64,000 nt of DNA from Lepidodermella squamata (GCA_047495785.1 JBLDXI010000055.1:930001-994000); one strand, 5' to 3'; shown: positions 12,732 to 60,503, counted from the first letter of the stretch. Program-made: numbers and translations. Notes: generated from the letters alone by a model not told the origin.

Positions 12732-13819
12732 TTAATGCTTGGTTTCAGGCATTTTGATTTCGTCTTTTTTACCGCTTTCCAGCCATTGCGTGAATGTCAT
12801 CATTTTCGGGTTAAGCTTCCGGGACACATCAACGCTTCGAATAGCCGCCAAATCCTCGGCACAATCGTTGAAAAACTGGAACATATTAGCAAGCTCGACA
12901 GCGCCCTTGAATGGCAACTTGCGATAGTCGTCGTAGCTGATCTGGCGAAATCGAATTTCTCGCCCGAGCGAATACGCAATTTTAGCGGTCATTTCCTTCA
13001 TGGACAAAAACTCGCCGCAAATCGCCACTCGCTTGTTGATGTACTCATCAGGGCGTTGAAAAATGTCGAGTGCACATCGGCCAATGTCATCAGACGCAAT
13101 GCCGGGAATTCGGGTGTCTGGCTCGATCGGCAGAGCGATTTCAAGCTTGCCGTCATCGCCGATTTTCGGCGCCAGCAGCTGCAGAAAGTTGTCCCAGAAG
13201 AATGCGGTTAGCATATAGGTGGTTGGAACGTTGTACTCTTCAAAGAAATGATCAGCCTCGCCTTTTGCGTCGCACTGTGGTACCTTGTAACGCTCGCCGG
13301 CGCCGAGTGACGGCATTGCTAAGCTGGTCAAAATCGGCAATCGGCGCCGGGAATCTTCGAACGTCGACCAAATAGCATGTTTAACCCCGGCCAAGCTAGA
13401 AAATTGATAGTTTCAGCCACATTTTGAGGAAATTTAAGATCTAACCTAGCTGCCCTGGCCATATTCTCAACCTGTCGAAGTTCATCGTCAGGATCCATGC
13501 GTTCCCAGAAGAATGAGACGCAAAACACGCCGTAGACGCCATCGAAAGCTTTCACCAAGGAGTCGAACACACGAACGTCACCGTGAACAACTTCAACACC
13601 TCGCTGCCGCAATTGATCGGCTTTTTCCGACGACTCGTCACGCGTTATTGCACGCACGGTGAAACCATTGCGGTCACCGCTTTCTAAAATTGCATTCACC
13701 AAGCTGCCACCTTTGCGAAAACCGAAAATGAAAATGTTTGAGATTAGATGAATAATGAAAATTGTACCTTGATGGCCAGTGGCTCCAACCACAGCCAATA
13801 CTTTAGTGCTACCAATCAT
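12732..13819 (-). CDS. NmrA/HSCARG-family protein, copy 1 (3 exons)
   Basis: VVGATGHQG Rossmann motif, RAITRD, WSTFEDSR, ANMFQF; introns 13767-13711 and 13445-13396. Confidence 0.9.
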
Positions 13820-20199: not shown

Positions 20200-21211
20200 T
20201 TAACCGCGAATCGGGATGAGATCTTTGTACTTGTTAAGCCAAGCGTCAAAGGTCAGCAAGTCGGGGCAAAGCTTGCGAGCCGTGTTCGGGCAGCGGATTT
20301 TCAGAACAGACTCTTCACACTTGGCGTAGTACAGCCACATGTTGGCAACGTCCTTGACGCCGGGGAAGCCGAATTTTCGGTAATCTTCAACGCTGATGTC
20401 GCGGTAACGAATGGTCTTGTTGAGGGCTCGGGACATTTTCTCCGCCATTTGGTTCACCGTCAATGCCTCGCTCATGATTCCGACTCGTTTGTTGGCGTAC
20501 TCGTTCTGATTCTTGAAGATGCTCAACGCGCACCTGCCAACATCTTCAGCCGACATGCCGCCGATTCGCTTCGAGCCCATGGGCAGCGCGATTTCGTAGT
20601 TACCATCCGACGACTTCTTAGGCTCCATGCCGAGATCGATGAAGTTCTCCCAGTAGAACGGCGTGATGAAGTAGGTGGTTGGGATGCCGGTTTCAGAAAA
20701 GAAACGATCAGCCTCGGCCTTGATATCGAATGGTGTCACCTTGTACTTGCCCGCAAGAATTGGGACATCGGGGTAACCCTTCAAAGCTTCACGAGTGTCT
20801 TCCAGGGTCGACCAGACAATGAACTTAATCCCAGCTTTTCTAAAATAATAAAATTGAATTTTTAACTCGATTTTCGGAGTCAAAGCTGATTTACTTGGCA
20901 GCGTTCGCCATGCTTCGAGCTTGTCTAAGCTCCTCGTCCGGGTTCATGTGGTGCCAATAGAACGTGACGGCGAACATGGCGTAGCATCCTCGGATCGCCT
21001 CGGTTAACCTATCTTCGTCGACCACATCGACTTCGCGCACTTCGATGCCGCTGGTTTTCAGCCATTGAGCGTTCATAGAACTGGTGTCTCTCGCGATAGC
21101 TCGAACCGCAAATTCGCAGTTATCGCCCTCTTCCATGATAGCGCGGACCAACCCAACGCCCTGGTGCCCAGTGCCACCAATGACAGCGATCAGCTTCTTG
21201 TCGCTCGGCAT
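20200..21211 (-). CDS. NmrA/HSCARG-family protein, copy 2 (2 exons)
   Basis: IAVIGGTGHQG, WSTLEDTR, FYWENF, FGFPG; intron 20894-20840. Confidence 0.92.
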
Positions 21212-24578: not shown

Positions 24579-27215
24579 TCAAGTTCTGATAGTTTTACGT
24601 TGGGCTTTAGCCATCATTTCCCGATAGTAGGCTCTCAATCGGTCTTTCTCTTTTTGCCAAGCCAAGTTGTCATCTTTCGACTGAAGAATACTTGCAGTAT
24701 CGTGATACGTCGGCATCTGTACATATTTTAAAGTAAGTAAATCGCACGTTTCAGAGAAATCAAACCTGGCTAGCAGTTAGACACTTTGCATCGCGCTCTA
24801 GGCCTTTGTTGTAGACAGCTTTGTTAACCATGACAACTTGGCAGTTGCCATTGCTGACAAAGAATATGTCAGGTTGTTTATTGACACCTAATGCTTTGGC
24901 TTGAATTCCGGTTTCTAAACTATCCTTCAACCACGGCTGAAGAGCATCAGTTACAGCAGTTTCCATGCCCTGGCAAAAAAGAGTCGATAAATTTGTCCGA
25001 AATTAGGTCAAATCGTAGGAAACTCACAAAGACAGCACCTGGCTCTGCTCTTCCTATCCTAGCAACAGTTACATTTCTCTCTCCACTGTCAGGAGTCGGG
25101 TGTGATTCGACGAAAACCAGCGGATCGTCGTCAGGCTGAATGGCCGGATAACTAATCGGCGGTATGGTTGTCGCCTCTTGAACTTTGGGATCAGTTGAAA
25201 ACGGCGTATTGCGCTGATAACGCCTCGGCACCGCCGTCAAAGCTCTGTTTCGAGGCGTTTTATCCCATGCCTCCGGCAACAGAAGCATGAACCCACTCGT
25301 ATCCGGCTCGTTATCCTGGCAGTGCTTATTCATCTTCCGCCACTCGTTTTCGGCCGGGTGTAACAGTGACAGTGTCTTCATATGCGTTTTGAACGGATCG
25401 CTGAGTTCACGCTCTTGTTTCCGGTGAGCTGACTCTTGACAAACGCCGTAAATATCTGCTGAACCCTTTTGAACAACACAGAAATATTTTGTTTTCTCCT
25501 TCGCAAGCGAGTGGCTGTCGATCATATCGGAGGCTGTCAAATTTGAGACTGCGAAATCGGAAGCTTTAGGGTCATTTTCGGCACGTTGCGGCTCTTTGCT
25601 TGCTATTATAGCGCCAGTTTGAAATGTCTGAACTTGCCACGATCTCTCGTCTGTTTTCAAATTGTCGAATTTAAAGTGTTTCAGCGTTTTGTGATCGGTG
25701 AAAGTTTGTTCAACGTCTTCAATACGGCATCGACCTAAAATAATTAAAATATAATTTTTACAGAAATTATTTTACAATTCCCAACCTTCAAGTCGATCTT
25801 TTGCTTCCAGGTAATCCTGTCTATTGATGTACAGTACCTCTGTATTGTCTTCATGCGTTACAACAGTAGCATTTCGCCGCAAATTGAGCACAACTTCGTC
25901 TTCACCGTAAATTTGCCCAATCGTAACCGATTTTTGTTCCGTTTCGCCCTCGCTCATTTTCGGCCGCAGAACTAAACTGCCCCATAGTACAATGTACCAA
26001 CCCTCAGATCTACGGCCGTATCGCGATAACACGCGGTTCTTTTCGTAAGAATCAAAAACTGCGATAGATGCGATTTCTTTTTGAAGTTGCAACGGGAAAC
26101 GGCGGAAAGACTGGAGTGTTTTAAGACATCGGACGATTTCGAGAATTTCCTCCGGCGATCGCTGGCCGACTTGCTTCATCAAAGACTGACGAGCAGCGGG
26201 TGTTAGGCACATAATGGCTGATTTTCTATCGACTCGATAATCGTTTTTGTTGAATCGCAGTTCAACGTAGGAGGATGAATCAACGGAATTGCTATCAACG
26301 GGCATTAACGTGACGAATTCGCAGCGGTCTTGAGCTTCGAGCTCTTTTTGAAACTTGCTCGAATCGGCCAGCAGCTGCTCGGACATTAAAAACCAATCTT
26401 CCTGTTTGACTTGAGCTGCAATCTCCCTGAAAAAACAGAGGAAAAGTCTATTAGGAAAATTCCGATAAATTAACGAGGTCAAAGCAAAAATAAATTAAAT
26501 TCACACGCTTTATACCAATGGCTTTCATTTGCTGTTACTCAGCATATCAAACAACTTGACAACAACAATAAAAACAAGCAATAAAACTCAATTAATCACT
26601 CAAAACTAAGTTCAAGCAACATGAATAACCCAAATCGATATCTTACTCTTCAACTGATTTTTTAACAATGCTAACAATATGGTTGTTATATGTGAAAGTT
26701 GAATGAAATCTCAAAGAAAAAAACCGAAATCTTTACCTCTTCCACATTTTGCACCAGTAGATAAGGTGACCGATAGCCCACGCCTTGCGCCGAAACATGT
26801 AGTACATGACTCGAGAGCGTTGCCGTTGAACATTGATGCCATGCCGTCGGTGAAATTCAGCCAGCGCGCTTTGTTGTTGCGCAACTGAAGATCGGCGGTG
26901 ATTAGATATTTGCCGCGTCAAACGCTGCTTCATCATTTCTCGAACCCGCGAACCTTCCTGGGTGACTTGAACCGGCGTAGGCGCCCTACTGCTGTTCGGT
27001 ACACTAAACGACCCGGCGGTTGACGGTCGCCGTCCATATGATAAATTGCTGTTAGTTCTAGTCAGCGGTAATTGCTGCTGGCCGGAGTTGGTTCTCGTTA
27101 AGGGCGATTGCTGTGACTGGGGGGTGTTCTCCACGATAACACCCAGGGCGCCGCTGTTCGTCCGGCCCAGTGGGGCACGAGGCGTTATGCTGTTAGATCT
27201 TGACAGCGGGATCAT
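24579..27215 (-). CDS. Cyclic-nucleotide-binding-domain protein (CNBD2-like), multi-exon
   Basis: WYIVLWGSL..GQIYGE..RRNATVVT..EVLYI cNMP fold; second split domain (RAEPGAVF|GME..VSNGNCQVVMV); GT-AG junctions; stop at 24579-24581. Confidence 0.75.
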
Positions 27216-30711: not shown

Positions 30712-31822
30712 ATGCCTGCTAAGAAGATTATTGCCATTGTCGGAGCCACTGGCTCTCAGGGCGGCGCCCTTCTCCGCGCCATCGTCAACGAGGGCGAAAA
30801 ATCCGAATTCGCTGTTCGCGCTATCACCCGCGATCCCAAGTCGGACAAGGTTTGCAACTTATTTTTTATTGTTTTAATGCTAATGTTATGCTTTATAATT
30901 CAGAGCCAAGCGCTGAAGAAGCTCGGCGTTGAAGTCGTTGAAGGCGATGCTAACAACGAAGAGTCGCTCGTCAAGGCGTTCGAGGGCTGCTACGGCGCCT
31001 ACTGCGTCACCTTCTTCTGGGACCACTTCAGCCCTGAAAAGGAGATGGAATCGGCTCGTGCTATGGCTAACGCTGCCAAGTAAGAACCTTAACACAAAGC
31101 CACAAAAAATCGCAACAATTTCTTTAAAAACCCAACTCAATTTTAAAATTCGTAATTTTAAGCATGATTTTTCCAATCTGTTTTTCAGAAAAACCGGTCT
31201 GAAGCACGTCGTCTGGTCGACCCTTGAAGACACCCGCAAATTCGTCCCGATCGGCACGACCATGCCGACGCTGATGGGCAAGTACAACGTGCCGCACTTC
31301 GACGCCAAGGGCGAGTGCGACCAGTACTTCGCCGAGCTGCCGGCCACCTACCTGTTGACCTCGTTCTACTGGGAGAACTTCATCTACTTCGGCTGCGGAC
31401 CTAAGAAGGGCACCGATGGCAAGCTGCACTTGAGCCTCCCGCTCGGCAAGAAGCCTATGTCTGGCATCGCTGTCGACGACATCGGCAAGTGCGCCCTCGG
31501 CATTTTCAAGCACCCCGAGTCGACCATTGGCAAGCGCATCGGCGTTGCCGGCGAGCACCTGACCGGCGCCCAGATGGCGGAGAAGCTGGGCAAGGCCCTC
31601 GAAAAGGAAGTCACCTACGACGAGGTCTCTTGGGATGCCTACCGCAAGTTCGGATTCCCTGGCGCCGATGAAATGGGCAACATGTTCCAGTTCTACCACG
31701 ACTGCGATAAGGAATTCATGGCCGCTCGCAACATCGACGAAGTTCGCAAGTACAACCCGGAGCTGATGAACCTCGACCAGTGGCTCGAGAAGAAGAAGAG
31801 CTACATTCCCATCGATGCTTAA
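30712..31822 (+). CDS. NmrA/HSCARG-family protein, copy 3 (3 exons, strong codon bias)
   Basis: Exons 30712-30849, 30904-31079, 31189-31822; VGATGSQG, WSTLEDTR, VPHFDAKGE, GNMFQF. Confidence 0.95.
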
Positions 31823-32083: not shown

Positions 32084-32914
32084 ATGACTAGTCGAGTGGC
32101 TTTAGTAACTGGCTCTAATAAGGGCCTGTGATTTGCACTGGTTAAAAAGTTGTGCGAACGAAAACCTGAATGGACTGTTTATTTAACGGCGAGAGACAAA
32201 AGCCGAGGCGAAGCAGCCGTCGAAAAGCTTCAATCACTCGGCCTCAAGCCACGGCTTCAAGTTTTAGATGTCGAATCAGCGGCCAGCATTCAACGCCTGC
32301 GAGATTACCTCAAGTCTGAACATGGAGGTCTGGATGTTCTCGTTAACAATGCCGGCATCTCCTTCCCGCCTGACACCAAAGTTCCTTTTAGTGAACAAGC
32401 TCGCATCACTTGCAATACGAACTATTTCGCTGCCATAGCTGTTTGCAAGGCGCTGTTCCCAATTCTTCGAGACCACGCTAGAGTCGTGAATGTCTCGAGT
32501 AAAATAGGTCATCAAACGTTCGCGAAATTATCTCCCAAGCTGCAAAATGCGTTCAGAGCGTGCACAACCGTCGAAGAAGTCGACAAATTGATGTCGGATT
32601 TCGTGGCTTTGGCTGGCGAGGGTAAGCATGAGGAAGCTGGCTGGGTTTATTCAGGCTATGGAACTTCAAAAATTGGCGTGACTGTGGCGACTTATATTCA
32701 ACAGCGAATGTTCGACAGCGATAAATCAAGGAAGGATGTTGTAGTAAATGCTTGTTGCCCCGGTTGGTGTCGAACGGATTCGACTGGCAATAAAGGCGTG
32801 AAGACGGCCGACGAGGGCGCTGAGACTATGTTCGACCTAGCAACATTGCCGGCCAACATCGAGCAGCCCCGGGGTCGATTTATTAATCAGAAAAAAATTG
32901 AAGATCTGTTCTGA
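32084..32914 (+). pseudogene. CBR1-like carbonyl reductase with in-frame TGA at codon 16
   Basis: MTSRVALVTGSNKGL*FAL; TGA 32129-32131 replaces the last Gly of TGxxxGxG; rest of frame intact (NNAG, YGTSK, CCPGW). Confidence 0.85.
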
Positions 32915-33963: not shown

Positions 33964-34934
33964 CTAGAACCAAACGAAATCTTTATCGCTAACAGGCAGC
34001 GCAGGTGTCGTCAGATCAGGGCCACGGTAGAGTGGTACGATTTTATTCGGGTTGATCTGGTGCATGCTGAGGAAAGATCCAACCACAACTTGATCCATAT
34101 CCAGCGCGTAGGCCACGCCAGGAAGCTGTGCGATTTTCTTCATCCATCTGAAGATATTTGGGTAGTCCTTCTCATCACGCAGCGACTTCAAATTGACCTT
34201 GCAAAGTGTCTCATAAATAGCCGGAATGCGGACAATCCACGGGAAAATCAGAAGGTCAATGGCAGTCAGAGCATCGCCAGCAATGAACTGGTGCTTGCCG
34301 AGTAAATCGTTCAAACTATCGAGCGTCTTGAAAAACGATTTCACGGCATCTTCGTACTCTTCCTGTGTCTTGGCGAACCCAGCGCGATATGACTTCATCG
34401 CCATGTCGCCCATCAGCCATGGCAGAAGCTCTTTCTCAATCTTGTCGGCAACATTGCCGGGGTAGAGGTCGATTTGCTTGCCGCCAATAACGCCGTTAAA
34501 CGCCGTGTTGAACATGCGGACAATATCGGCTGATTCATTGTTAACAATTTGCTTCGTCTTTGTGTCAAAGAGAACTGGTACAGAAACAGCGCCATCATAG
34601 CCGGGCTTGCTTAGATGGTAGATCTCTTTCAGGAACTTGGCATTTATGACAGGATCAACGCCTAGTTTCGCATCAAAGGCCCATCCATTATCAGGATCTC
34701 GGGCGGAGCTCAAAACAATGACTTTGACTACTCCGTCAAGTTTCTTAACAGCCCGAGCGAGCAAGGTTCGGTGGGCCTGGGCAACAATAAAGATTTGCAC
34801 GCAAAATTAAGGCAAGAAAAACTATAGCTTACGAATGGGCAGACAAGAGCGACGTACAAGATGTAACGATCCGCTTCAGGCTTGAAGGTTGGATGATCGT
34901 TTGAGATGAATTCACGGAATTGTCCAGCTGCCAT
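33964..34934 (-). CDS. Glutathionyl-hydroquinone reductase (Xi-class GST, YqjG/ECM4-like), copy 1
   Basis: RYILYVALVCPF|AHR (intron 34832-34777), SVPVLFD, IVNNESADI, YRAGFAKTQEEY, YPNI, INPNKIVP. Confidence 0.92.
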
Positions 34935-35984: not shown

Positions 35985-37901
35985 TCATTTATTTTTGGCC
36001 TCATTTGCACCGGGTTTAGGCCCATATAGCTCGCTTATGTGAGTTTTCAACGGTCTGCGGATGCGCTCGCCAAGAGTGGCAATGGCGTGGCGAGCCCCAG
36101 ACCACGTGTGCGGACCGAATACACGATAGTAGTAAGGGACAACATGGCCGAAATAGTAATGATAAGCTAACCTTTGAAAAAGCAGAAAAATGCAGCTCAG
36201 TTTAGTAAAATCGGTCTAAAATCACTTCCAATCCCCGGTTAGCATCATCCACGTCAAGGAAGGAATGCATCCTATCTCAGCAGCGATTTCGTCCATGTAA
36301 GCAACGCCATCAACCTAAAGAGGTGTCATTTTTAAATATGCCGATTACTTGAAAATACCTGAATAGTGTGGCGCTGTGAAGCTACATATCGCTCCGAAAT
36401 TGATTTCTTTCGTTGATTTATCTCCTTCCATCGATTCTCTACAGATGGTAGGTCCGAATCTCCACAGAATACTCTAACCTATTAAATTCAAGTTATCCAA
36501 AGTGGAGGAATTTAATTAATATTTACTGCCCAGCGAGACTGCAATTCGCTTATTGGCATGATTGCCCCAATAGGTTGAATACAGCCAATAATAGCTAGAG
36601 TTGGATGCTTCAAATAGGGCGGGAATACCAATTTATAAAGATCGATTTGATTAGCCTCGACTTTGACGACACTTTGAGGCAAAAACGCGAATCCGAAAAT
36701 GTAACCAGTGCCCAGAATGACCGCATCCAAGTCCTTGATTTCGGTGCCATCGACAAATTCAACGGAATTGGGACCAAAGCACTTGATGTCCGGCTGAACT
36801 TTTATCAAGCCACTCAAGACTCGGTTTGGAAAATCGTCGTTCACCTGATTTTTAACATAATAAATGATTAAGTAGTTGCATAATGTCTCGTCATACCAAG
36901 ATGTGTTGCGCAGAGGGTCCATACTTGGGGCGAAGGCCCAAGAGGTCGTGATCAACTTTGATGATCAACTTTTCGGCACACAAATCACTAACCCACCAGG
37001 GAAATAGATTTAGCAAATTTGCTGTGAATCTATTCATAGCGGAATCGAGAGGCATTCCCTGGGAGGAAATAATCTTTGGAAATTAAATTAACTAGGGACA
37101 AAATAAGCGAACATTAGGAAGCGAACGAGGAAAACACCAGGTTCCCCTACGTGTACTGATATGCAAAGATTTTGCAAAGCGGCACAGCTCGACAGCAACG
37201 TCGCCGCCAGAGTTCCCAATCCCAACAACCAGAACGTTCTTATCGACAAACTGGTCACCCTTCTTGTAGTCGTGGGTGTGAAGGACGATTCCTTCAGGAC
37301 AAAATTAAACGTGGAAGATTAATTCTAGGAAAATATTCTTGCCTTCAAACTTGTCAAGGCCAGGCAGCTTTGGGACATTTGGCTGAGCATGATGGCCAGT
37401 GCATACTAGAACGCCATCGAAAATTTCTTTCTTGTCTACATTTTTTTCGTTGCGATAACTGACTTCCCAACGACCTGTTGAAGTATTGGTTTGAATAAAT
37501 TCAGGCTTATAGTAAATGTACACACCGGTAGATTCGTAATCGCTAGCGTAATCAACTTTCGAGACCGATGTTTTAAACTGAATATGTTTAATGAGTCCAA
37601 AATGATCCGCATATTTTCGGAAGTATTGCAGAATCATATCGTGACGCATGAAGTTTGGGTAATCGTCGGGAATAGGAAAATCGCTGTACGCCATAACTTC
37701 TTTGCTGGTGTTGATTACCGTGCTCTTAGCAACACTGCCTTTAGCTGTGATCTCATCAGTATACCGCCACAGTCCGCCGATGTCGTTTGTACCTTCAAAG
37801 CAAGTGACATCAGCGCCTGCCTCCAGGCACGATTTGATAGCAGCTAAGCCAGAAGCTCCCGCTCCGATAACGCAGAATCGCTTCTTGTTCTCCGAAGGCA
37901 T
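35985..37901 (-). CDS. Dimethylaniline monooxygenase (FMO5-like), multi-exon
   Basis: VIGAGASG, GGLWRY, INTSKE..YSDFP, CTGHH, FEG..LHTHDYK, VVGIGNS, STRRGTW, GTGY, GAIMPISELQSRW, RHTIQ, GPHTWSGAR. Confidence 0.92.
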
Positions 37902-39294: not shown

Positions 39295-40268
39295 CTAGAA
39301 CCAAGCGAAATCTTTATCGCTCAAAGGTAGCGCAGGTGTCGTCAGGTCAGGGCCGCGGTAAAGTGGTACAAGTTTATTTGGGTTCAGCTGATGCATGCCG
39401 ATGAATGTTGCAGCCACAACTTGATCCATATCCAGTGCGTAAGCAAAGCCCGGAAGCTGTGCAATTTTCTTCATCCATTTGTAGATATTCGGATAGTCCT
39501 TCTCATCACGCAGCGACTTCAAATTGACCTTACAAAGCGGCTCATAAATAGCCGGAATGCGGACAATCCACGGGAACACCAGAAGGTCAATAGCTGTCAG
39601 AACATCGCCGGCTATGAACTGTTGCTTGCCAAGCAAATCGTTCAGACGATCAAGTGAACCAAAGAACAATTTCACGGCATCTTCGTATTCCTGCTGAGTC
39701 TTAGCCAAACCGGCCCGAAATGACTTCATCGCCATGTCATTCATCAGCCATGGCAGCAGCTCTTTCTCGATCTTGTCGGAAACATTGATGGGATACAGAT
39801 CGATTTGCTTGCCGCCAATAACTCCATTGAACGCCGTGTTGAACATGCGAACAATGTCGGCCGACTCATTGTTAACAATTCGCTTCGTCTTAGTGTCGAA
39901 CAAGACTGGGACCGAAATAGGTCCACTGTAGTCGGGCTTGCTTAGAAGATATATCTCTTTCAAGAACTTGGCATTGATGACTGGATCAACGCCTAGTTTC
40001 GCATCAAAAGCCCATCCATTCTCATGGCATCGAGGAGCTGAACTCAACAGAACGACTTTAACAACCCCTTCTAGTTTTTTGACAGTCCAAGCGAGCAAAG
40101 TTCGGTGGGCCTAAAAATACATAATGCAGGCTGTGGATATGACAAGACATTTGTATAGCTTACGAATGGGCAGACCGTAGCGGCGTATAAGATGTAACGA
40201 TCCGCTTCAGGCTTGAAGGTCGGATGTTCGTTTGAGATGAAGTCACGGAATTGTCCAGCAGCTGCCAT
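39295..40268 (-). CDS. Glutathionyl-hydroquinone reductase, copy 2
   Basis: VCPF|AHR with the same intron position; IVNNESADI; SFRAG in place of SYRAG. Confidence 0.92.
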
Positions 40269-41248: not shown

Positions 41249-42222
41249 TTAGAACCAAGCGAAATCTTTATCGCTCAAAGGTAGCGCAGGTGTCTTCAAG
41301 TCAGGGCCCCGGTAGAGTGCAACGATTTTATGCGGGTTGATCGCTTGCATGCCAAAGTATGTTCCAACCATAATTTGATCCATATCCATCGCGATGTCAA
41401 CGCCAGGAAGTTGCGCAATTTTCTTGGTCCAGGTAAAAATATTCGGATAGTCCTTTTCATCACGCAGCGACTTCAAATTTAGCTTGAAAAGCGGCTCGTA
41501 AAGAAACGGAACGCGGACAAGCCACGGAAATACCATGAGGTCGATTGCAGTCAGAACATTACCAGCTATGAACTGCTGCTTTCCAAGCAAATCGTTCAAG
41601 CGATCGAGCGAGCTGAAGAACATTTTAGCATTAGTTTCGTATTCTTCCTGGGTCTTGGCGAAACCAGCCGCATATGTCCTCATCACCATGTCATCCATCA
41701 ACGGCGGCAACAGTTCTTTTTCGATCTTGTCAGCATTGGCAATATTAGGAGGATAGAGGTTGATTTGCTTGCCTCCAATAAGACCATTGAAAGCCGTGTT
41801 GAATATGCGAACAATGTCGGCCGACTCGTTGTTAACAACCAGCTTCGTCTTAGAGTCGAACAGGGCTGGGAGCGAAGCAGGACCAGTGTAGTTAGGGTTG
41901 CCTAACAGGTAGATATCTTTCAAGAATTTAGCATTGATGACCGGATCGACGCCGACTTTAGCATCGAAACCCCATCCGTTTTCAGGGTCTCGGAGAGAAC
42001 TCAAAATAACGACCTTAACGACCTTCTCGAGTTTTTTGACAGCCCTAGCCAGCAAGGTTCGGTGAGCCTATAGAAATAGAGTTGCCGGCTATGAATGACA
42101 AAAAGTAAATAGCTTACGAATGGGCTGACAAGAGCGACGTACAAGACGTAACGATCCGCTTCAGGCTTGAAGGTCGGATGGTCGTCAGAAATAAATTCGC
42201 GAAATTGTGCCACAGCCGCCAT
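41249..42222 (-). CDS. Glutathionyl-hydroquinone reductase-like, copy 3 (catalytic Cys>Ser)
   Basis: LVSPF|AHR; AGC at 42126-42124; frame otherwise intact. Confidence 0.92.
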
Positions 42223-42925: not shown

Positions 42926-43971
42926 TTACATCCATGCATAATCGCTGTCGCTATGTGGAATAGCCGGAGTCAAAAGGTTAGGACCTCGGTAGATTGGCGC
43001 CATTCTCGACGGATTTACCGCACGCATATTATTGGCCATGCCGATCACAATGTCATCCATCTTCAGCGTTTCAGCAACACCGGGAACTTGCGCTACCCGT
43101 CGCAACCAGTTGAAAATATTCGGATAGTCCACGTTGTTTCGCAGCGATTTCAAGTTGACTTTGCACAAATATTCGAAGCAAGCAGGAATTCGTAAAATGT
43201 TGGGGAAGATGTTCAGGTCAGCTTCACTAAACACATCTCCAGCCAGGAATTTACGCTTCGAAAGCAGCTCATCGAGTTGATCAAGAGCTGCGAAAATCTC
43301 CCACGATATTTTATCAAACTCTTCTTGAGATTTTGCATTGTTGATGAAGTAGACCTTCATCGCGACATCGTTTACCAACCATTTGAGTCTCTTCTCACCT
43401 TCGGCAGCCAATTCAGGTGGGCTCAGATTGATTTGCTTCCCCTCAACAACACCATGGAAGGCGGTGTTGAGCATGTGAACAATTGCAGCCGAATCGTTGT
43501 TGACAATGGTGTTGGTCTTGGTGTCGAAAAGCACAGGAACTGAATAAGCACCGGTGTATTCCGGCTTGAATTTGTTGTAGATCTCCTTCAAGAACTTGGC
43601 ATTCATGACTGGGTCGACGCCGTACTTGGGATCGAATTGATAGCCATTGTCAGGATCGCGAAATGGACTCATAACAACGAGTTGAATGTATTTCTCCAAT
43701 TTCTTCACGGCTCTGACTATTATTGCTCGGTGGGCCTGAATAAAATTGAGCCGATTAACCCCTGAATCAAGGTTTGAAATTTAAAACTCACGTATGGGCA
43801 AACATAAGGGCCGTAGATGATGTAGCGACCAGCCTCAGGCTTGTAAATCGGATGGTCTTTCGAGATGACTTCGAGGAAAGGATCGGTCGTCATTTTATAC
43901 TTGCTTGACAGAAAACTTTTTGAGTAAGCAACTAGAGGCGAAAATATTCTGCGTTGAAAACTTGTCAGCAT
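42926..43971 (-). CDS. Glutathionyl-hydroquinone reductase, copy 4 (two in-frame ATGs: 43971, 43893)
   Basis: YVCPY|AHR, SVPVLFD, IVNNDS, YPNI, VNPSR. Confidence 0.9.
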
Positions 43972-44427: not shown

Positions 44428-45644
44428 ATGTCTGCAAAGAAAGTTATTTCGATTATTGGAGCGACCGGCAAGCAGGGTGGAGCTCTGCTTCGTGCAATTC
44501 TGAACGAGGGCGCTTCGAGTGAATTTATTCCTCGAGCTATCACCCGTGACTCATCATCCGAAAAAGTAGGCAGCTTGATTTTTCCGACCCACTTTGCCAG
44601 ACATCAGCTGAGATTTTTCGAGAAAAATTGATAAAACGCTAGTGTTAGCCTAAAATCGTGGACAAATGTTGGCTTGATAAATCCTTATCGGGCTTTTTGC
44701 CTTATATTTCTGAGCCAACTGGTCACCTTTTCCTTATATTGTTATCAAACTATTAGCCTTTGTAATTACTTTTGTTTCAACTTAAAGGCACAAGAATTGA
44801 AGAAACTCGGTGCTGAATTGGCCCAAGCTGATGCCAATGACATTCCTGCCCTGACAAATGCCATCAAGGGCTCTTATGGCGTCTTCGTTGTATCCATGCT
44901 CGACTTCGGAGACACTGAAAAGGAGATTGCCCAGGCGAAGAACATGGCCGAGGCTGTTAGGTAATAAGGGAAAATCACAATTACCCACAGTTTTAATAAT
45001 AATTAATTCTCTAAAGGAATGCCGGGGTCAAGCACGTGATCTGGTCAACGCTCGAGGACACTCGCAAGCAGTTTCCTTTGGAAAGCACCCATTTGCCGAC
45101 GATCCAAGGCCGATTCAAGGTCCCCCATATGGACTCGAAGGGGGAATCTGACGCCTTTTTCGCTGACCTGCCAACTACCTATTTGCTGACCTCATTCTTC
45201 TGGGACAACCTCCGTCCTAACGGTTTTGTCCGTAAATACCCCGACGGCAAGCTTTACATCACCCTGCCGGGTTTTGATGACAAGAAAATGCCTGGAATTT
45301 CGACGGAAGACATCGGCAAATGTGCTTTGACTATTTTCAAACGCCCTGAACTTATCAACAAGCGCATCGCCATAGCCAGCGATCACGTGAGCAAAGCTGA
45401 CATGGCGGCGATTTACAAGAAGGTTCTCAACGTCGACGTCTTTCCTGGCAGCGTTACCTTTGACGAATTCCGCCATCAGGGTTTCAAAGGCGCCGATGAT
45501 CTTGGCAGCATGTTCCAATACTTCCACGATTCGCCCGATTTTCGTCAAGTGCGCAGTGTTGAAGAGACGAAAAAACTGAACCCGGAACTGCTGTCCTTTG
45601 AACAATGGGTCGTCAAAAACAAGGACACCTTCAAGTTCACCTGA
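44428..45644 (+). CDS. NmrA/HSCARG-family protein, copy 4 (3 exons)
   Basis: Exons 44428-44565, 44788-44960, 45017-45644; IGATGKQG, WSTLEDTR. Confidence 0.92.
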
Positions 45645-45787: not shown

Positions 45788-46609
45788 ATGACTCGGGTAG
45801 CTGTCGTCACTGGTTCGAACAAGGGCCTAGGGTTGTCAACTGTTAAACAATTGTGCCAGCAAAACCCAAGCTGGATTGTCTACCTCACATCGCGCGACAA
45901 GCAACGCGGCGAAGAAGCTGTAAATCAGCTCAAATCTCTTGGCCTCAATCCTCGTTTCCATGAATTGGATGTTCAATCTGTAGAAAGCATTCGGGCTCTT
46001 CGTGATCACCTTAAAGCTGAGCATGGCGGTCTCGACGTGCTGGTTAACAATGCTGGTCTGGCTTTCCTGAAAGACTCACCCGAACCGTTGTCTGAACAAA
46101 TTCGGGTGACCCTGGCAACTAATTATTACGGTGCTCTTTCCGTTTTCACCGAATTAGCACCGATTTTGCGAGACCATGCTCGTGTGGTAAATGTTTCAAG
46201 CCGACTGGGTCACACGATCTACGGAAAGTTGTCACCCCAACTTCAGGAGGAGTTCAAGAAATGTAAAACTATCGAAGAGCTGAACAAACTCATCAACGAT
46301 TTCGAGGTTCAGCAGGAAAAGCACGAAGCTTCTGCCTCGGTATTCGGCAATTACGGAATGTCGAAAATCGGCCTAACGGTTGCTTCGGCCATCCAACAAC
46401 GGCAACTGGACGCTGATAAGTCGCGTAAAGGCCTGATTGTCAACGCGTGCTGCCCTGGTTTCTGCAAAACGGATTTGAATAAAAATTCAGGAACTCGTTC
46501 TGCTGATGAGGGAGCTGAGACCATTGTCTACCTGGCGACTCTGCCGGAGAACAGCACCGAACCACGTGGTCGATTTGTCAATGAGAAAGTTGTTAATGAC
46601 CTGTTTTAA
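45788..46609 (+). CDS. CBR1: Carbonyl reductase [NADPH] 1-like, intact
   Basis: TGSNKGLG, LVNNAG, VVNVSS, YGMSK, NACCPG; intronless. Symbol denotes family, not proven orthology. Confidence 0.92.
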   Translation: MTRVAVVTGSNKGLGLSTVKQLCQQNPSWIVYLTSRDKQRGEEAVNQLKSLGLNPRFHELDVQSVESIRALRDHLKAEHGGLDVLVNNAGLAFLKDSPEPLSEQIRVTLATNYYGALSVFTELAPILRDHARVVNVSSRLGHTIYGKLSPQLQEEFKKCKTIEELNKLINDFEVQQEKHEASASVFGNYGMSKIGLTVASAIQQRQLDADKSRKGLIVNACCPGFCKTDLNKNSGTRSADEGAETIVYLATLPENSTEPRGRFVNEKVVNDLF

Positions 46610-46842: not shown

Positions 46843-47676
46843 ATGGCCGCTCGAGTTGCCGTAGTCACAGGGGCTAACAGAGGACTGGGCTTTTCTCTAG
46901 TCAAACAGCTCTGCCAGCAGAAGCCAAACTGGACCGTTTACCTCACAGCCAGAGATAAAGGTCGAGGCGAGGCAGCCGTGGCCCAACTTCAGTCGTCAGG
47001 CTTGAAACCGCGATTTTACCAACTCGATGTTGAATCGCCTCAAAGCATTCAAACCCTTGGTAATTACCTTAAATCTGAACACGGCGGCCTTGATGTCCTT
47101 GTCAACAATGCTGGAATAGCATTTCCTTTCGGGTCCAAGTTTTCTTTCGGTGAGGAAGCTCGTCGAATTTGCGCGACGAATTACTTTGCAGCCACTGCGG
47201 TGAGCAAGGCACTGTTCCCTCTTCTTCGCGATCATGCCCGGGTCGTTTATGTTTCAAGTCGCATCGGCCACACAGCTTTTTCGAAGCTATCTCCTCAGTT
47301 GAAGGAGGCGTTCAAGAGCTGCAAAACTGTCGAAGAGTTGGACAAATTAATTGCAGAGTTTGTGAGGCTGGCCGGCGAAGGTAAGCATGAAGCTGCTGGT
47401 TGGGTGAAAGCTGATGGCCTGGGAATTTCTAAAGCTGGACTCACCGTCGCGACGTACATTCAGCAGCGGCTTTTGGATGCAGATAAGTCGAAAAAGGACA
47501 GGATTGTCAACGCCTGTTGCCCTGGTTGGTGCAAAACTGACATGACTGGAAACAAGGGAACGAAAACGGCTGACCAGGGTGCTGATGTTATGCTTTACCT
47601 GGCAACGCTGCCTGATAACTGCGACCAGCCCCGTGGCCGCTTTGTAAATGAGCGCAAGATCAATGACATGTTTTGA
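46843..47676 (+). CDS. Carbonyl reductase 1-like lacking the catalytic Tyr
   Basis: TGANRGLG, NNAG, CCPGW intact, but YxxxK reads LGISK. Confidence 0.9.
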   Translation: MAARVAVVTGANRGLGFSLVKQLCQQKPNWTVYLTARDKGRGEAAVAQLQSSGLKPRFYQLDVESPQSIQTLGNYLKSEHGGLDVLVNNAGIAFPFGSKFSFGEEARRICATNYFAATAVSKALFPLLRDHARVVYVSSRIGHTAFSKLSPQLKEAFKSCKTVEELDKLIAEFVRLAGEGKHEAAGWVKADGLGISKAGLTVATYIQQRLLDADKSKKDRIVNACCPGWCKTDMTGNKGTKTADQGADVMLYLATLPDNCDQPRGRFVNERKINDMF

Positions 47677-50366: not shown

Positions 50367-51421
50367 ATGTCTGCTGCCAAGAAAATTATTTCGGTCATCG
50401 GTGCCACTGGCCAGCAAGGTGGTGGTCTTCTGCGAGCTATCACGAGCGAGGGTGCTAATGGGCAATTCATCGCCAGAGCTCTAACCCGTGACGTCAATTC
50501 GAAAAAGGTTCGTAATCCTCAATTATTTTTATTTTAGTGATTGATTGATTTGTTTAATCATCAGGCGCAAGAGTTGAAGAGCCTTGGTGCCGAAGTTGTC
50601 CAAGCTGATGTCACCAATGAAGCCGGTCTGGTCGAGGCTATCAAGGGCTCGTATGGCTTGTTCTGCGTCACCGCGCTCGAGGCGAATGACCCATCGAAAG
50701 AAACTGAGCAAGCCAAAGTCATGGCTTCGGCTGCTAAGTAAGTTTTGCCTATACAAAATAATTCTGTTCTTAATCTAAAATTTTCATATTAACCAGGAAA
50801 GCCGGTATCAAACACGTTGTCTGGTCGACACTTGAGGACACTCGGAAACAAATTCCTCTCGAAAGTACCAGCATGCCGACCCTATTCGGGAAGTACAAGG
50901 TTCCCCATTTCGATGCTAAAGGTGAAGCTGACAAGTACTTTGCCGATTTGCCGACTACTTACTATTTGGTACCGTATTTCTGGGAAAATATCATCAGCGG
51001 CGGCCCGCGCAAGGGTCCCGATGGCAAGTTGTACCTGACCATTCCGATGGGTGATAAGCACATGCCGGGTATTGGCACTGAAGATATCGGGAAGTGCGCG
51101 TTTGGCATTTTCAAGCACCCTGAACTGATTGGAAAGCGCGTCGGCGTCGCTGGCGAGCATTTAACCATCGCGCAAATGGCTGAGAAATTGTCGAAAGCTC
51201 TGGGCAAAGAAATCCATTACCACAAAGTTTCTTTTGACGACTTCAGGAAATTCCCGTTTCACGGAGCTGAAGAATTCGGCAACATGTTCCAGTTCTACCA
51301 CGACACCGAGCCAACCTTCCGCGCGGCTCGAAGCGTTGAAGAGGGTCGCAAGTTGAACCCTGAAATCAAGAATTTCGATCAGTGGCTGGCTAAAAACGGC
51401 AGCAAGATTGTTATCGAATAA
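50367..51421 (+). CDS. NmrA/HSCARG-family protein, copy 5 (3 exons)
   Basis: Exons 50367-50507, 50565-50737, 50797-51421; TATA at 50281. Confidence 0.92.
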
Positions 51422-51967: not shown

Positions 51968-53022
51968 ATGTCAGTTTCCAAGAAGGTTATCTCAATCGTT
52001 GGTGCCACTGGGCAGCAAGGCGGCGCCCTGATGCGAGCTATCATCAGCGAGGGCGCCAATGGACAATTCGTCGCCAGGGCCCTGACTCGAGATGTAACTT
52101 CCAAAAAGGTATATTGATAGCGTATTATTGTTTTAAGTGATTATACATACCTATGCCATTTTTACAGGCTGTGGAACTCAAAAACCAAGGCGTTGAAGTT
52201 GTACAGGCCGATATTAATAAGGAGGACGATTTAACTCAAGCTATCAAGGGTTCTTATGGCCTATATTGCGTCAGCACGTTGGATCTTCACGAGCCTGCCA
52301 ACGAGACCGAGCAAGCTCGGATCATGGCTTCAGCTGCCAAGTTTGTGTTAATCATTCCTGTAAAATCGCATCTATAAAATTAGTTCATTAGAGCTGCTGG
52401 TATTAAGCATGTCATCTGGTCAACGCTCGAAGATACTCGAAAGTTAATCCCACTGGAGAGCACAAGCATGCCGACTTTATTTGGCAAGTATAAAGTCCCT
52501 CATCTCGACGCGAAAGCTGATGGTGATAAATTTTTCGCCGATTTGCCCGCAACTTACTTGATGACGCCCTTCTTCTGGGAAAACTTCCTAATCAAGGAAA
52601 TGGCTCCAAAAAAGCTGCTGTTTGGGAAGTATATGATCGGACTACCGATGGGGCAGAAGGCTATGGCTGGAATCTCTACAGCTGACATCGGAAAATGTGC
52701 GTTGGGCATTTTCAAGCGTGAAGACTTAATCGGCAAACGAATCGGCATCGCCGGCGAGCATCTGCCGCTATCCGAAATGGCTGAAAAAATGACAAGAGCT
52801 CTTGGAAAGCACATAATCTATGTTCCGATTCCCTTCTTTTTGTTTCGAAGATTTCCGTTTCCCGGCGCCGTTGAATTCTCCAATATGTTTCAGTTCTTTC
52901 ACGATTGCGAGCAACAATTTCTAGCGGCGAGGAGTGTTGAACAATCTCGCAGTATCAACCCAGAGTTGAAAAATTTTGATCAATGGTTGGAGGAATTTAA
53001 GAATAAAATTCCGCTGGCTTGA
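51968..53022 (+). CDS. NmrA/HSCARG-family protein, copy 6 (3 exons)
   Basis: MSVSKKVISIVGATGQQG; same two intron positions as copies 3-5. Confidence 0.92.
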
Positions 53023-53668: not shown

Positions 53669-54713
53669 TCAAGCTGCAATTTTGATTTTATCCTTGTTCT
53701 TAGACAGCCACTGGTCGAAGTTCATCAGTTCGGGGTTTAGCTTAGCAGCGACCTCGACGCTTCGCGAAGCTCGAAAAGCGACGTCACAGTCGTGGTAGAA
53801 CTGAAACATGTTGCCGAGGTCTTCAGCACCGGGGAAGGGCATTTTCCGAAAATCGTCAAACGGCACCGGCACATAGGTAATCACACGTCCCATAGCCTTC
53901 GACATTTTCTCCGCCATTTGCAGCAGAGTCAAATGATCGCCAGCAACACCGATCCGTTTTCCGATTAAATCTTGACGCTTGAAAATGCCCAGCGCACATT
54001 TCCCGATGTCAGTTGTAGAAATTCCGGGCATAATCTTCCGTCCCATCGGCACTGCTAAGAGCAGCTTGCCATCGGGGCCTTTTCTCGGGCCGAATCCGGC
54101 GCTGAGGAAATTCTCCCAGAAAAATGAAGTCATGTAGTAAGTGGTTGGGAGACTTTCAAAGTATTTATCCCCATCAGCCTTCGCATCGAAATGAGGCACC
54201 TTGTACTTGCCAAACAACGTCGGCATGCTCTTGCTCTCGAGCGGGACCTGTTTACGGGTATCGTCCAAGGTTGACCACACGACATGCTTGATTCCCGCAG
54301 ATCTGTGAATTTAAAAAATTATTTAAATTTGGACGTTATAAATTAGCTAACTTGGCAGCTGCTGCCATGATGCGGCATTGCTCGGTTTCTTGCGACGGGT
54401 CACCGTGACTCAAAGTTGTGATGCAGAACAAGCCATGCGAGCCTTTAATAGCCGCAGCCAAGTCCTTCTCGTTGTTCACATCGGCCTTCACAACCTCGGC
54501 GCCGTGCTTCTTCAACTCCTTTGACTATTTCCAAAATTTAATAAAATTCAGGGAAAATCATTGATCAATCATTACCTTTTTCGAAGTATCATCTCGTGTC
54601 AGAGCTCGAGCAACGAATTGGCTGTTGCTGCCCTCTTTGCCGATAGCTCGTAGTAGAGCTCCGCCCTGTTGGCCAGTGGCTCCGATGATCGAAATGACCT
54701 TTTTGCTCGCCAT
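53669..54713 (-). CDS. NmrA/HSCARG-family protein, copy 7 (3 exons)
   Basis: MASKKVISIIGATGQQG, WSTLDDTR, VPHFDAK, GNMFQF; same two introns. Confidence 0.92.
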
Positions 54714-56400: not shown

Positions 56401-57401
56401 ATGTCGAAAAAAGTTATAGCAGTCGTCGGCGCGACTGGGGCTCAAGGTGGCGGCTTGATTCGAGCTATTATGAGCGAGGGTGACCAAAGCGAATTCACAG
56501 CTAGAGCCATCACTCGAGACCCTGAATCTGTTGCGGCTAGAAAGCTAGCTGATTTGGGCGTCGAAGTCGTCAGAGGCGACATTAACGACGAAACGGCTTT
56601 TGCTTCGGCTATTCAGGGCGTTTACGGACTGTTTTGTGTCACCCTATCGGGTTATGAAGACTACTCTCCAGAGCAAGAAATCTGCCAGGCTAAAGTCATG
56701 TCAGCCGCTGCTAGGTATATTAATTCTTATATTCTTTTATTTTAATTTAAAAAATTAATTTTCAACTCAGAAATGCTGGCATAAAGCATGTGATTTGGTC
56801 GACTATGGAGGACACTCGTCTGAAAATTCCGCTTGAAAGTAACGTTATGCCAACATTGAACGAGCGCTTCAAGGTGCCTCATTTCGACTCGAAAGGTGAG
56901 TCTGATCAATTTTTCGCCGACCTGCCAACAACCTATTTGCTGACTTCGTTCTTCTGGGAGAACTTCATCGACCTGCAAATGGGCCCGAAGAAGTATTCAG
57001 GCCAGCTTTATCTGCCACTGCCGATCGGGAAGAAGCGCCTGGCGGGCATTTCCTCGGCTGATATCGGAAAATGCGCGCTTGGCATTTTCAAGCAGCCTGA
57101 GGATTACATCGGCAGACGCGTCGGAATAGCTGGCGAAATTTTGACTCTCGCGGAGTTGTCTCATAAAATGACGGACTCACTCGGCAAATCAGTCGTACCT
57201 TACGAAATGTCGTTCAAAGAATATCGCAAATTGCAATTCGAGGGCGCCGATGATTTTGCGAACATGTTTCAATTTCTCCACGATTTTGAGGAGGACTACT
57301 GCGGCGCGCGGAGCGTTGAGGAATCGCGAAAATTGAACCCTGACCTCATGAATTTCGATCAATGGATGGAGAAGAACAAAGACCGCATCCCGTTGAAGTG
57401 A
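56401..57401 (+). CDS. NmrA/HSCARG-family protein, copy 8 (2 exons)
   Basis: VVGATGAQG; intron 56716-56770; WSTMEDTR. Confidence 0.92.
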
Positions 57402-57669: not shown

Positions 57670-58502
57670 ATGGCTTCGAACATGTCCTTCAACATGATGC
57701 CTGGTCATCTCAATGCCACGATGGTTCCCTCTGGCCATCATCACCATCACCCGCACAACACCCAGGGTGTCTGGAACAAGGCCCCCTTCGGATTCGGCGA
57801 ATCGACCGCTATGGCTCCCTTCGTCAACCCTGGTAAAATTTCAGGCAATCTTTTTTTATTAAGTTAATTTGATGAATGTTTTTAGCGACTGGTATGGACA
57901 TTTCGCGCGCTATGGCTAACCCGATGGGCTTCATGGACCAGATGAGCCGTGCCATGTCCAACCCGGCTGATCTTGAGCGCAATTTCCGCGGCATCGAACA
58001 CGCCATGCAGCGCCAGATGATGGGCATGGAGCGCGAGATGGAGCGCATGCTGAAGAACGCGGACCGCAGCTACACCTCTGACCTGGTTCACCACCCGTCG
58101 CGCCCGGCCAGCGTCATGGAGCACTACTCGCTGACGAACCCGATCCGCATCGACAACGAGGGCAACCGCTGGTTGAACGTCTACTTCGACATGCGCACGT
58201 TCAAGCCGGAGGAGATCACCGTGGCGCTGAACTCGAAGGAGCGCTCGATCACCGTCGAGGCTAACCACGAGGTCAAGGACTCGAAGGACCACTACATCAA
58301 GCGCCACTACGCCCGCAAGTTCTTCCTGCCGGAGAACATCAACGCTGATCTGTCCAAGGTCGAGCTCAAGTCGTGCCTCACCAACGACGGCCTGCTCTGC
58401 GTCGAGTCGGCCCTGCCCAAGATCACCCCTGAGGAGGCCGCCAAGATGTCGCTGACCACCCCGCACACCTTCTCCGTCCCGATCGCCGTCAAGCACATCT
58501 AA
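57670..58502 (+). CDS. Small heat-shock protein, copy 2 (2 exons, strong codon bias)
   Basis: FDMRTFKPEEITV..HYARKFFLP..LTNDGLLCVE..VPIAV; intron about 57833-57885. Confidence 0.9.
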
Positions 58503-58752
58503 ATCTCCAAAAAAACTCTGAGAACTTTTCATTTCGATGATTTATCGTTGAAATTTGATTCGAATTTGATCCGAATAAACTGATTGGGTATTAGGATTTT
58601 TGAAGGTTTTTTCACTTGATTTATTGGCAGGTTTTATTATCACGTCAATCAGCAACAAATTAGAGGTAATTAATTATTAAGAGGTAACAGATCAGGTTTT
58701 AGGATAAAACTTCAAAGATAGCAGTCATTTCAATGCGTGGAAATTCGTCTTT

Positions 58753-59871
58753 TCACTGGTCTTTCGATGATAAATTGTCGATATCCTTCGGTTTGTCCTT
58801 GGGGAAAGTGCATCCCAAGTGCTGAATGCTGATCGAAGACGTTGTGAAAGCGCACTTGATGCACTCTTCAATCGATTTGCCGCGAGATAACTGCGCCAAA
58901 TAGCCGCCAACAAACGCATCACCCGAGCCGTTTCGATCGACGAACCGGTCAGATTCAAGTTTCGGAATCTCGAACGTCTTCACGTCGTCATTGATCGCTA
59001 CAACAACAGGCTGGTCGCTGTGGGTGCATACGACGATTCGTTTCGAGTCAGGCCGCGATTTCGGCAATTTAGCCACAGCTTTTGCGATCGATTTCGTATC
59101 GCCATTAATTCCGAGCGCCTTTCCGAACGCGTCGAATTCCTCGTTATTGCCAAACAGGACGTCGACAAACGGCAATACATCTAGTAGCTTTTGTTTATGA
59201 TCAGTCGCGATGTAGGGCGCGGATAAACACATAGCGAGTCGCTTATCTTGACTGCCTGCAACATGCTTGCCGACTTTGATAGCCGCATCGACGTTTGAAG
59301 GCAAGAAAAATCCCTATTCAAGCGGTTAGGAAAATTGTAAAGATTTTCGTAAAATTGTACCTCAATGTAGATAATTTTAGCCTTCTCCACGTAAGACCAA
59401 TTCTCGGTGAGATGATCGATCGAAAACTTTGACGCTCCACCCAGACTAGCGACTAGCGCCCGGTTCTGGTTGTGATCACCCGAAACCAGCACCAAGCAGC
59501 ACCCGGTTGGGTCGTCAACTGTTTCGTAGACGCCGTTGATACCCGATTGGTGAGCTTTTTCTTGTAGAATACTGCCAACCCGATCACTGCAAATCGCGCC
59601 CAAATAGGTAACAGTTCCAGCTGGTTTCGGCAGCAGCCATTCAATAGTTCGCGCGACGTTCTGGCTTCCGCCGCCTGGCACGTGACCGGAGGCGTGGTAA
59701 CGCTTTTCGAGTTCTTCATGCAATGCGTTGAACTTTTGAACGTCAAGGATGGTGGCGTCATTGACCTTCAGTTGATGCTCGTCGAGAAACGCAGTATCGA
59801 CGAAATAAGTCACGTCTAACAGAGCATTGCCGATGCAAAGCACCTCGCCTGAACCTTTTGATGGATCGCTC
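58753..59871 (-). CDS. ADK: Adenosine kinase (first exon not located)
   Basis: IGNALLD, PGGGSQNVAR, PTGCC, NRALVASLG, YIE|GFFL (intron 59360-59314), DVLFGN, DRNGSGDAFVGG PfkB signature. Confidence 0.88.
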
Positions 59872-60503
59872 CTGAAATGGGATAAAATAGGATGTAGGTA
59901 CAATTTGAAGCTCAATAAAGTTACATTTTTCTTGAAAAATCTTGAAGAATTATCCGAGGATATAAGTCTTAAAAGCTGAAAAAATTGTAACGAAAATAGG
60001 ACAGACTGCGGTCGAGAACCGTAAAAGTATGTGTCTGAATCGAGGTTGTCAGCCAAGCGTGACGAGCGGCCTTATTCAGCGGAATGGATAATGTCTTTTC
60101 AGCGATACAGGCAAACCTCCGCCGTAAATAATCAAAAGATGTTGTGGTTTTTACATCTCAATTGGTAAACTGAAAAATGAGATCGGGATGCTGTATTCAC
60201 TGTCTGCTTCAAAGATAGCCGCACATTTTGACCAGTGCGACGAATGCCTCTCGGTCAGCAGTCAAGTGCAGCCTCAACGACGTGCCAGAGGAGCTTATAA
60301 TAGGCCTAATTAGATCTAATGAGCATTAACCGCTTTTAGGCGACATCGCGTGATCTGCCTCTCGGAGGCCATACATATAGGATCGGCAGTTAAAAAAACA
60401 GGAAAAATGAGGGTTCATCGCGAAAATAACACGACCATTTTTTCTTTATGCCATTTTATTCACAGAATGAAATTGGATTTTGGCGACACATCAGATAAAT
60501 TGT

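Follow-up and report, generated by a model that had tools for sequence, protein, structure and literature searches.

The eight NmrA-family genes found in the window (the whole 64-kb stretch of DNA that was analysed) are best explained by the acquisition of a bacterial gene by the animal lineage and its later duplication, a reading to which we give a probability of about 0.6. We infer the transfer itself, and its direction, from sequence comparisons. One gene of a bacterial NmrA/HSCARG subfamily of 316-aa proteins would have been the ancestor of all eight copies, and it was most likely acquired from a bacterium by an ancestor of the animal lineage. The gene would then have gained spliceosomal introns, first the phase-2 intron present in all copies and later the phase-0 intron of copies 3-7, and would have been duplicated repeatedly, with some duplications preceding the divergence from at least one other animal.

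The NmrA gene array and its introns

A tblastn search with spliced copy 3 detected eight intact NmrA-family copies in the window, all within 45 kb. Each of them gave an unbroken open reading frame (ORF) of 312-326 aa after removal of GT..AG introns of 49-222 nt. The eightfold family named in the original prediction was recovered as eight intact, intron-bearing genes, with the following models.

Copy 1, 12732..13819, minus strand: 326 aa; exons 13819-13768, 13710-13446 and 13395-12732
Copy 2, 20200..21211, minus strand: 318 aa; exons 21211-20895 and 20839-20200; its one intron is the shared phase-2 intron
Copy 3, 30712..31822, plus strand: 315 aa; exons 30712-30849, 30904-31079 and 31189-31822; introns of 54 and 109 nt
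Copy 4, 44428..45644, plus strand: 312 aa; exons 44428-44565, 44788-44960 and 45017-45644; introns of 222 and 56 nt
Copy 5, 50367..51421, plus strand: 312 aa; exons 50367-50507, 50565-50737 and 50797-51421
Copy 6, 51968..53022, plus strand: 314 aa; exons 51968-52108, 52168-52340 and 52392-53022
Copy 7, 53669..54713, minus strand: 314 aa; exons 54713-54576, 54524-54352 and 54302-53669
Copy 8, 56401..57401, plus strand: 314 aa; exons 56401-56714 and 56771-57401; its one intron is the shared phase-2 intron

The copies are 40-71% identical to one another, and copy 2 is the most divergent, with 40-48% identity to the others. The genes and ORFs in their neighbourhood are listed below.

33967-34800, 39298-40098, 41252-42055, 42929-43708 and 47893-48702, all minus strand: five GST genes
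32150-32914, 45788-46606 and 46843-47673: three SDR genes, carbonyl-reductase-like
4854-6155 and 37308-37901: two FMO-like ORFs
14309-15754, plus strand: reverse-transcriptase ORF (Pfam RVT_1, 482 aa), between copies 1 and 2
1710-2492: zinc-knuckle ORF
25775-26482, minus strand: cyclic-nucleotide-binding ORF (Pfam cNMP_binding), between copies 2 and 3
57876..60056: HSP20-like ORF and PfkB kinase gene beside copy 8 (Pfam), the microsynteny anchor with metagenomic scaffold L081

Two HSP20-domain ORFs flank the PfkB kinase gene (window positions 57876-61314), and an ankyrin-repeat ORF detected with Pfam is also among the neighbours of eukaryotic type. The reverse-transcriptase and zinc-knuckle ORFs are remains of retroelements in the array region.

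The splicing of copy 3 matches its gene model. A 1121-nt contig of the public RNA-type run X3 spans the three exons and omits the 54-nt and 109-nt introns, the RNA-type contigs of runs X4 and X7 contain the same exon joints, and the introns are covered in the DNA-type run X1. Because the contigs show exact removal of the introns, copy 3 is a real, spliced and transcribed gene and not bacterial contamination. For the array as a whole, contamination or an assembly artefact is suggested by the bacterial-like protein sequence and by nothing else; against it stand the GT..AG introns removed in RNA contigs, the base composition, which resembles that of the host genome, and the arrangement within a single 64-kb stretch, where eight diverged copies are interspersed among a retroelement and genes of eukaryotic type. 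We regard this explanation as having a negligible probability, and the earlier exclusion of contamination on the basis of introns and neighbours is upheld by the RNA contigs and by the eukaryotic type of the flanking genes.

Codon usage was compared by GC content at third positions (GC3), which is 0.80 in copy 3, 0.51-0.69 in the other seven copies and 0.43-0.53 in nine neighbouring ORFs. The bias of copy 3 towards C- and G-ending codons had been noted before, and these values bear it out. A high expression of copy 3, as had been read from this bias, is plausible and fits the data; the word depth over copy 3 is very high in the RNA-type contigs of run X4, a measure that cannot rank genes.

The positions of the introns record the order of events. 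A phase-2 intron, located in a Lys/Arg codon after ...AA(K) and after aa 104 of copy 3, occurs in every one of the eight copies as well as in P0254, a relative from a metagenome described below, and predates the duplications. A phase-0 intron after ...SDK/SKK (after aa 46 of copy 3) is common to copies 3-7, and copy 1 has a private phase-1 intron inside its GxxGxxG motif, after aa 17. The introns of frog NMRAL1 lie after residues 13 (phase 1), 93 (phase 0), 176 (phase 1) and 240 (phase 0), and none of the four coincides in the alignment with an intron of the window copies. As modest evidence, this mismatch would fit a gain of introns after the acquisition.

Family membership and relatives in bacteria and eukaryotes

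All three exons of copy 3 match the Pfam family NmrA (PF05368), at profile positions 2-40, 43-94 and 98-297 of 298 and with scores of 34.7, 35.9 and 74.9 bits (cut-off, 27 bits). Exon 3 of copy 3 had no match in NCBIfam, and matches in the protein atlas were confined to broad NmrA clusters of bacterial, chordate and ascomycete proteins. The closest solved structures, searched with exon 3 alone, were those of human HSCARG/NMRAL1 (PDB 2EXX, 3DXF and 2WM3; E 7e-30). The motifs from which a bacterial subfamily had been proposed are present and are best kept in copy 3, namely WSTLEDTR, MPTLxGKYxVPHFDAKGE, FYWENF, GPKKGxDGKL and FPGAxxxGNMFQF. The N-terminal dinucleotide-binding motif GxxGxxG reads GATGxQGG in every copy except copy 2, where it reads GGTGHQGVG.

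The region following WSTLEDTR distinguishes the copies from known animal proteins. An insert of 9-13 residues between WSTLEDTR and HFDxKGE (FVPIGTTMPTL in copy 3) occurs in all eight copies and in the bacterial proteins P0121 and P0001, and it is absent from the NMRAL1 proteins of human, frog and P0401, which read FSGLEN where the copies read WSTLED. The predicted difference from animal NMRAL1 in the WSTLEDTR-PTL segment was thus found as an insert shared by the copies and bacteria and missing from human and frog NMRAL1.

A word-index collection of 5.8 billion proteins was searched with exon 3 of copy 3, with an exon-3 profile of the eight copies and with P0254, and the best 120 matches were listed for each query. 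These matches are proteins of 313-317 aa with 59-64% identity over exon 3. Taxon names were attached to about one-tenth of the listed matches, most rows being unnamed, and every named match was bacterial (Bryobacteraceae, NC10/Methylomirabilales, Nitrospiraceae, Gemmatimonadales, Ignavibacteria, Rhodospirillales, Terriglobia, Manganitrophus, Salegentibacter and Zixiibacteriota). No named animal homologue occurred among the best 120 matches listed for each of the three queries, which is weak evidence, since the collections consist mostly of prokaryotic metagenomes and most matches are unnamed. Such lists of best matches are no guide to whether other animals have the gene, because slowly evolving bacterial proteins outrank diverged animal orthologues. 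A single outlier, P0421, scored above the bacterial matches to P0254 and was rejected as a eukaryotic relative, being a bacterial protein encoded in DNA of 69% GC. This protein (L084:236-1486) contains an internal duplication of about 95 residues, from AAKAAGV..HV.WSTLED to ..LPGM, which is either real or an assembly artefact.

The subfamily is widespread in bacteria. A scan of one genome per species gave 533 confirmed loci in more than 12 phyla, on contigs of up to 5 Mb, including cultured strains of Nibrella and Nitrospira. Over its full length, copy 3 has an identity of 62-65% with the best-matching bacterial proteins (414 bits) and of 43% with frog NMRAL1 (240 bits). Pairwise identities among the sampled bacterial members are 54-100% (median, 70%), and NMRAL1 is 43% identical both to the animal copies and to the bacterial proteins. 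Together with the position of the copies in the bacterial-subfamily group of the trees, these values agree with the bacterial NmrA/HSCARG type that had been assigned to the array.

When 1.84 billion cluster representatives were searched exhaustively with a profile, 3005 relatives were retrieved, of which 222 had E <= 1e-30. Among them, P0254 is nearer to copy 8 than to any bacterium. It is located on a eukaryotic scaffold of 8.5 kb and 39% GC from an ENA metagenome (L081), where it adjoins genes for PfkB and a rhodopsin-type GPCR, and it is longer by 22 residues, which come from a GT..AG intron left unspliced at the exact site of the intron common to the window copies. In tblastn comparisons, gene products of L081 matched the ORFs beside copy 8 with 48% identity for the HSP20-like protein and 56-60% for PfkB. 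The order NmrA, HSP20-like, PfkB is conserved between window positions 57876-61314 and L081:2372-4798, with PfkB inverted. P0254 is an orthologue of copy 8 from a second animal-like genome, which is fairly distant. Given the intron and the neighbours that this orthologue shares with copy 8, the acquisition must date far back, as must some of the expansion.

Other eukaryotic relatives were of several kinds. P0256 and P0260 come from 1-kb contigs of one JGI sample, one of which ends in an AT-rich tail with AATAAA, and both proteins group with copies 1 and 2. P0365 is the NMRAL1 of the frog Leptodactylus fuscus (XP_075140363.1), and P0401, a related NMRAL1, scored 218 bits against human HSCARG. 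The P0255 cluster, which includes a transcript of Euglena mutabilis, and P0257, which has a basic N-terminal extension, branch elsewhere among bacteria and not beside the animal clade. The scatter of microbial-eukaryote members among bacteria suggests independent and repeated acquisitions of the gene.

Four bacterial-type proteins from metatranscriptomes (P0255, P0257, P0302 and P0375) have N-terminal extensions of 85-110 residues, which include a Ser/Gln/Tyr repeat, a Lys/Ala-rich basic tail and a possible targeting peptide, and they are scattered over different branches among bacteria. In addition, the 229-aa ORF of P0297 starts with VIFFFFQ|ARSVASAAKK, resembling a polypyrimidine tract and acceptor site that were read through, located where frog NMRAL1 has its intron 2. 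This start hints at other intron-bearing eukaryotic relatives, which may have a different intron pattern.

Phylogenetic placement and competing origins

Careful maximum-likelihood (ML) trees were computed for 64 rows, with LG+C20+F+G4 by PMSF, and for 51 rows, the latter with the longest branches left out. In the 64-row tree, the eight copies form one clade with P0254, P0256 and P0260 (support 93/99), which is sister to a Bryobacteraceae protein (90/91), and the NMRAL1 group, consisting of frog NMRAL1, P0401 and a Cafeteria protein, is set off by a branch with 100/98. In the 51-row tree, support was 99/98 for the animal clade and 97/86 for its grouping with Bryobacteraceae. Within the animal clade of the careful trees, copy 3 branches first, copies 4-7 form a clade (100/97), and copy 8 and P0254 are sisters (100/99). 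In a quick tree of 137 rows, 114 of which were bacterial, the animal clade (99) fell deep among bacteria, at a spot different from that in the careful trees.

The copies formed one clade in every tree, so they have a single origin and were duplicated afterwards. The trees did not resolve the bacterial backbone, which does not follow phyla, and the sister taxon of the animal clade shifts with sampling; the donor lineage cannot be named. That the backbone does not follow phyla suggests that the gene moves among bacteria.

Approximately unbiased (AU) tests were applied to two constrained topologies in both row sets, with the following results.

Named bacteria as one clade excluding the animal genes, 64 rows: lnL lower by 4.9, p-AU 0.425
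Named bacteria as one clade excluding the animal genes, 51 rows: lnL lower by 19.7, p-AU 0.213
Animal clade held with NMRAL1, 64 rows: lnL lower by 28.7, p-AU 0.18
Animal clade held with NMRAL1, 51 rows: lnL lower by 19.3, p-AU 0.229

None of these four tests on 64 and 51 rows was significant, and neither bacterial monophyly nor the union of the animal clade with NMRAL1 was rejected. An AU test on a quick 51-row tree, in which the constrained tree beat a short free search, is superseded by the careful 51-row tree. The proposal of horizontal transfer is therefore borne out in part. The bacterial type of the proteins, their single clade and its separation from NMRAL1 in the best trees speak for it, as does the flagging of genes of this kind in a sponge by a published alien-index screen, but the AU tests reject no alternative (p 0.18-0.43). 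On whether the copies group with metazoan NMRAL1, the best trees keep the two apart (100/98), although a tree joining them is not rejected (p 0.18-0.23). Expansion after the transfer agrees with one clade that was later duplicated; the orthologue of copy 8 and its conserved synteny, however, indicate that the expansion was not purely local or recent.

The AU results also bear on vertical inheritance, according to which an old eukaryotic paralogue of NMRAL1 evolved slowly and was kept here and in a few protists while most animals lost it. The p values of 0.18-0.23 for the animal clade with NMRAL1 and of 0.21-0.43 for monophyletic bacteria are compatible with such a history. The gene is also old in the lineage, having an orthologue with conserved synteny on another animal-like contig, and the 43% identity of NMRAL1 to both groups means that the families are not remote. 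Nevertheless, vertical inheritance needs many independent losses, and it has to account for an identity of copy 3 to bacterial proteins that falls inside the range found between bacteria. Furthermore, the best trees place the animal clade beside one bacterial family (97/86), the eukaryotic members do not cluster together, and no intron is held in common with frog NMRAL1. We consider vertical inheritance unlikely, but to be taken seriously.

The gene might also have reached the animal lineage through an intermediate eukaryotic carrier of the bacterial-type gene, either a protist, an alga or a fungus. Microbial eukaryotes do hold the subfamily, as illustrated by the P0255 cluster with its Euglena mutabilis transcript, and N-terminal extensions of a kind typical for eukaryotic proteins occur in several representatives from metatranscriptomes. 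However, such eukaryotic sequences branch elsewhere among bacteria, and the named sequences nearest to the animal clade come from bacteria, which makes this route distinctly improbable in our judgement.

The place of copy 3 deserves separate consideration, since its basal position in the trees conflicts with the phase-0 intron that it has in common with copies 4-7 only. Either other copies have lost this intron, or the short branch of copy 3 has placed it at the base artefactually. A separate and more recent transfer of copy 3 from a GC-rich bacterium, with its GC3 and short branch as the signs of this event and not of codon selection, would agree with the GC3 of 0.80, with its being the most bacteria-like copy and with its first branch in the animal clade. 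However, both introns of copy 3 recur at identical positions in other copies, the phase-2 intron in all of them and the phase-0 intron in copies 4-7, and the introns of copy 3 are themselves AT-rich. Because of the shared intron positions, copy 3 derives from the same intron-bearing ancestor as the other copies, and a separate transfer is very improbable. A single acquisition from a bacterium followed by duplication remains the preferred reading for all eight genes.

Predicted role, gene neighbourhood and comparison with known systems

The classical catalytic motif of SDR enzymes is YxxxK, in which the Tyr is replaced in NmrA and HSCARG. The copies read HFDxK at the aligned site, where human HSCARG has HFDGK and frog NMRAL1 has HFDSK. 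The Lys of this HxxxK motif is invariant in all eight copies, and the His is replaced in copy 1 (PQCDAKGE) and copy 2 (TPFDIKAE), in which the ancestral activity may have been altered or lost. Copies 1 and 2 are also the fastest-evolving copies. From homology, we infer that the copies are NAD(P)H-binding, atypical SDR-like proteins, and the products most likely act as NADPH-dependent reductases or as redox sensors like HSCARG, which has been described as a sensor of NADPH (PMC8633732).

The arrangement of the array, in which NmrA copies are interleaved with GST, SDR and FMO genes, fits a predicted function in redox metabolism or in the handling of electrophiles and xenobiotics. The clustering suggests a redox or xenobiotic role that is open to biochemical test. 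We also considered whether the NmrA/HSCARG genes and the neighbouring Xi-type GSTs, which are likewise of bacterial or fungal type, represent one acquired bacterial quinone/hydroquinone toolkit that was amplified into a linked cluster with carbonyl reductases and FMOs. A hint of this is a Xi-GST-like gene within 3 kb of the NmrA/HSCARG gene at 2 of 80 bacterial loci, both in Nitrospirota genomes (L034:1508-2269 and L018:2-211), where the GST lies approximately 0.7-3 kb from the NmrA/HSCARG gene and is 31-37% identical to the window GSTs (E 4e-50). Co-transfer with Xi-GST genes as an operon was rejected, as a GST-like neighbour at only these two loci amounts to no general linkage. The idea of a shared toolkit is accordingly a doubtful one; if true, a toolkit taken up by an early animal lineage would have seeded a detoxification cluster by transfer, which is rare in animals.

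Animals have so far yielded few well-documented examples of bacterial genes that are expressed and have expanded, and these bear on the share of transfer in early animal genomes. The strengths of the present case are clean gene models, splicing confirmed by RNA, an intron gain dated before the duplications and a syntenic orthologue, which make it a good phylogenomic test case. The advance is incremental, because prokaryote-derived NmrA-like genes of sponges are already in the literature.

The bacterial NmrA/HSCARG proteins of approximately 316 aa, such as those of Bryobacteraceae (HLH44885.1, P0121) and Salegentibacter chungangensis (P0485), have the same length as the copies and share with them GATGxQGG, WSTLEDTR, MPTLxGKYxVPHFDAKGE, FPGAxxxGNMFQFY and the insert. 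The bacterial genes are intronless and single-copy at the loci examined, whereas each window gene has one or two introns and belongs to a multigene family that has diverged. NMRAL1/HSCARG shares with the copies the Pfam family, the fold class and the motifs GxxGxxG, HFDxKGE, FPGA..NMF.FY and LDQWLE. It differs from them in having no insert after FSGLEN/WSTLED, in a 5-residue deletion near the C-terminus and in its four introns at other positions.

The closest published precedent is the sponge Amphimedon queenslandica, in which NmrA-like is among the commonest Pfam domains of 227 prokaryote-derived genes (Conaco et al. 2016, PMC4784904). The S1 Table of that study lists six PF05368 entries as transfer candidates, with an alien index of at least 45 and a prokaryotic best match. 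This alien index is an indirect pointer to a patchy distribution among animals. Two of the sponge genes, Aqu1.213765 and Aqu1.213766, are in tandem on one contig, have three exons each and are expressed, and they have homologues in the transcriptomes of Haliclona amboinensis and Ephydatia muelleri (Conaco et al. 2016, PMC4784904). Studies of Ephydatia have also described an NmrA-like gene that is induced upon algal infection. The Amphimedon genes and the window copies, compared by description and not by sequence, are alike in being PF05368 genes of an animal, tandem, with three exons, expressed, host-like in composition and prokaryotic in their best matches. The Amphimedon genes were listed only, with no tree or intron analysis, and the window differs from Amphimedon in having eight copies in 45 kb amid GST, SDR and FMO genes. 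The idea of an expansion of a bacterial NmrA-like gene in a sponge-like animal is thus already published at the level of a list, to which the window adds a well-resolved case.
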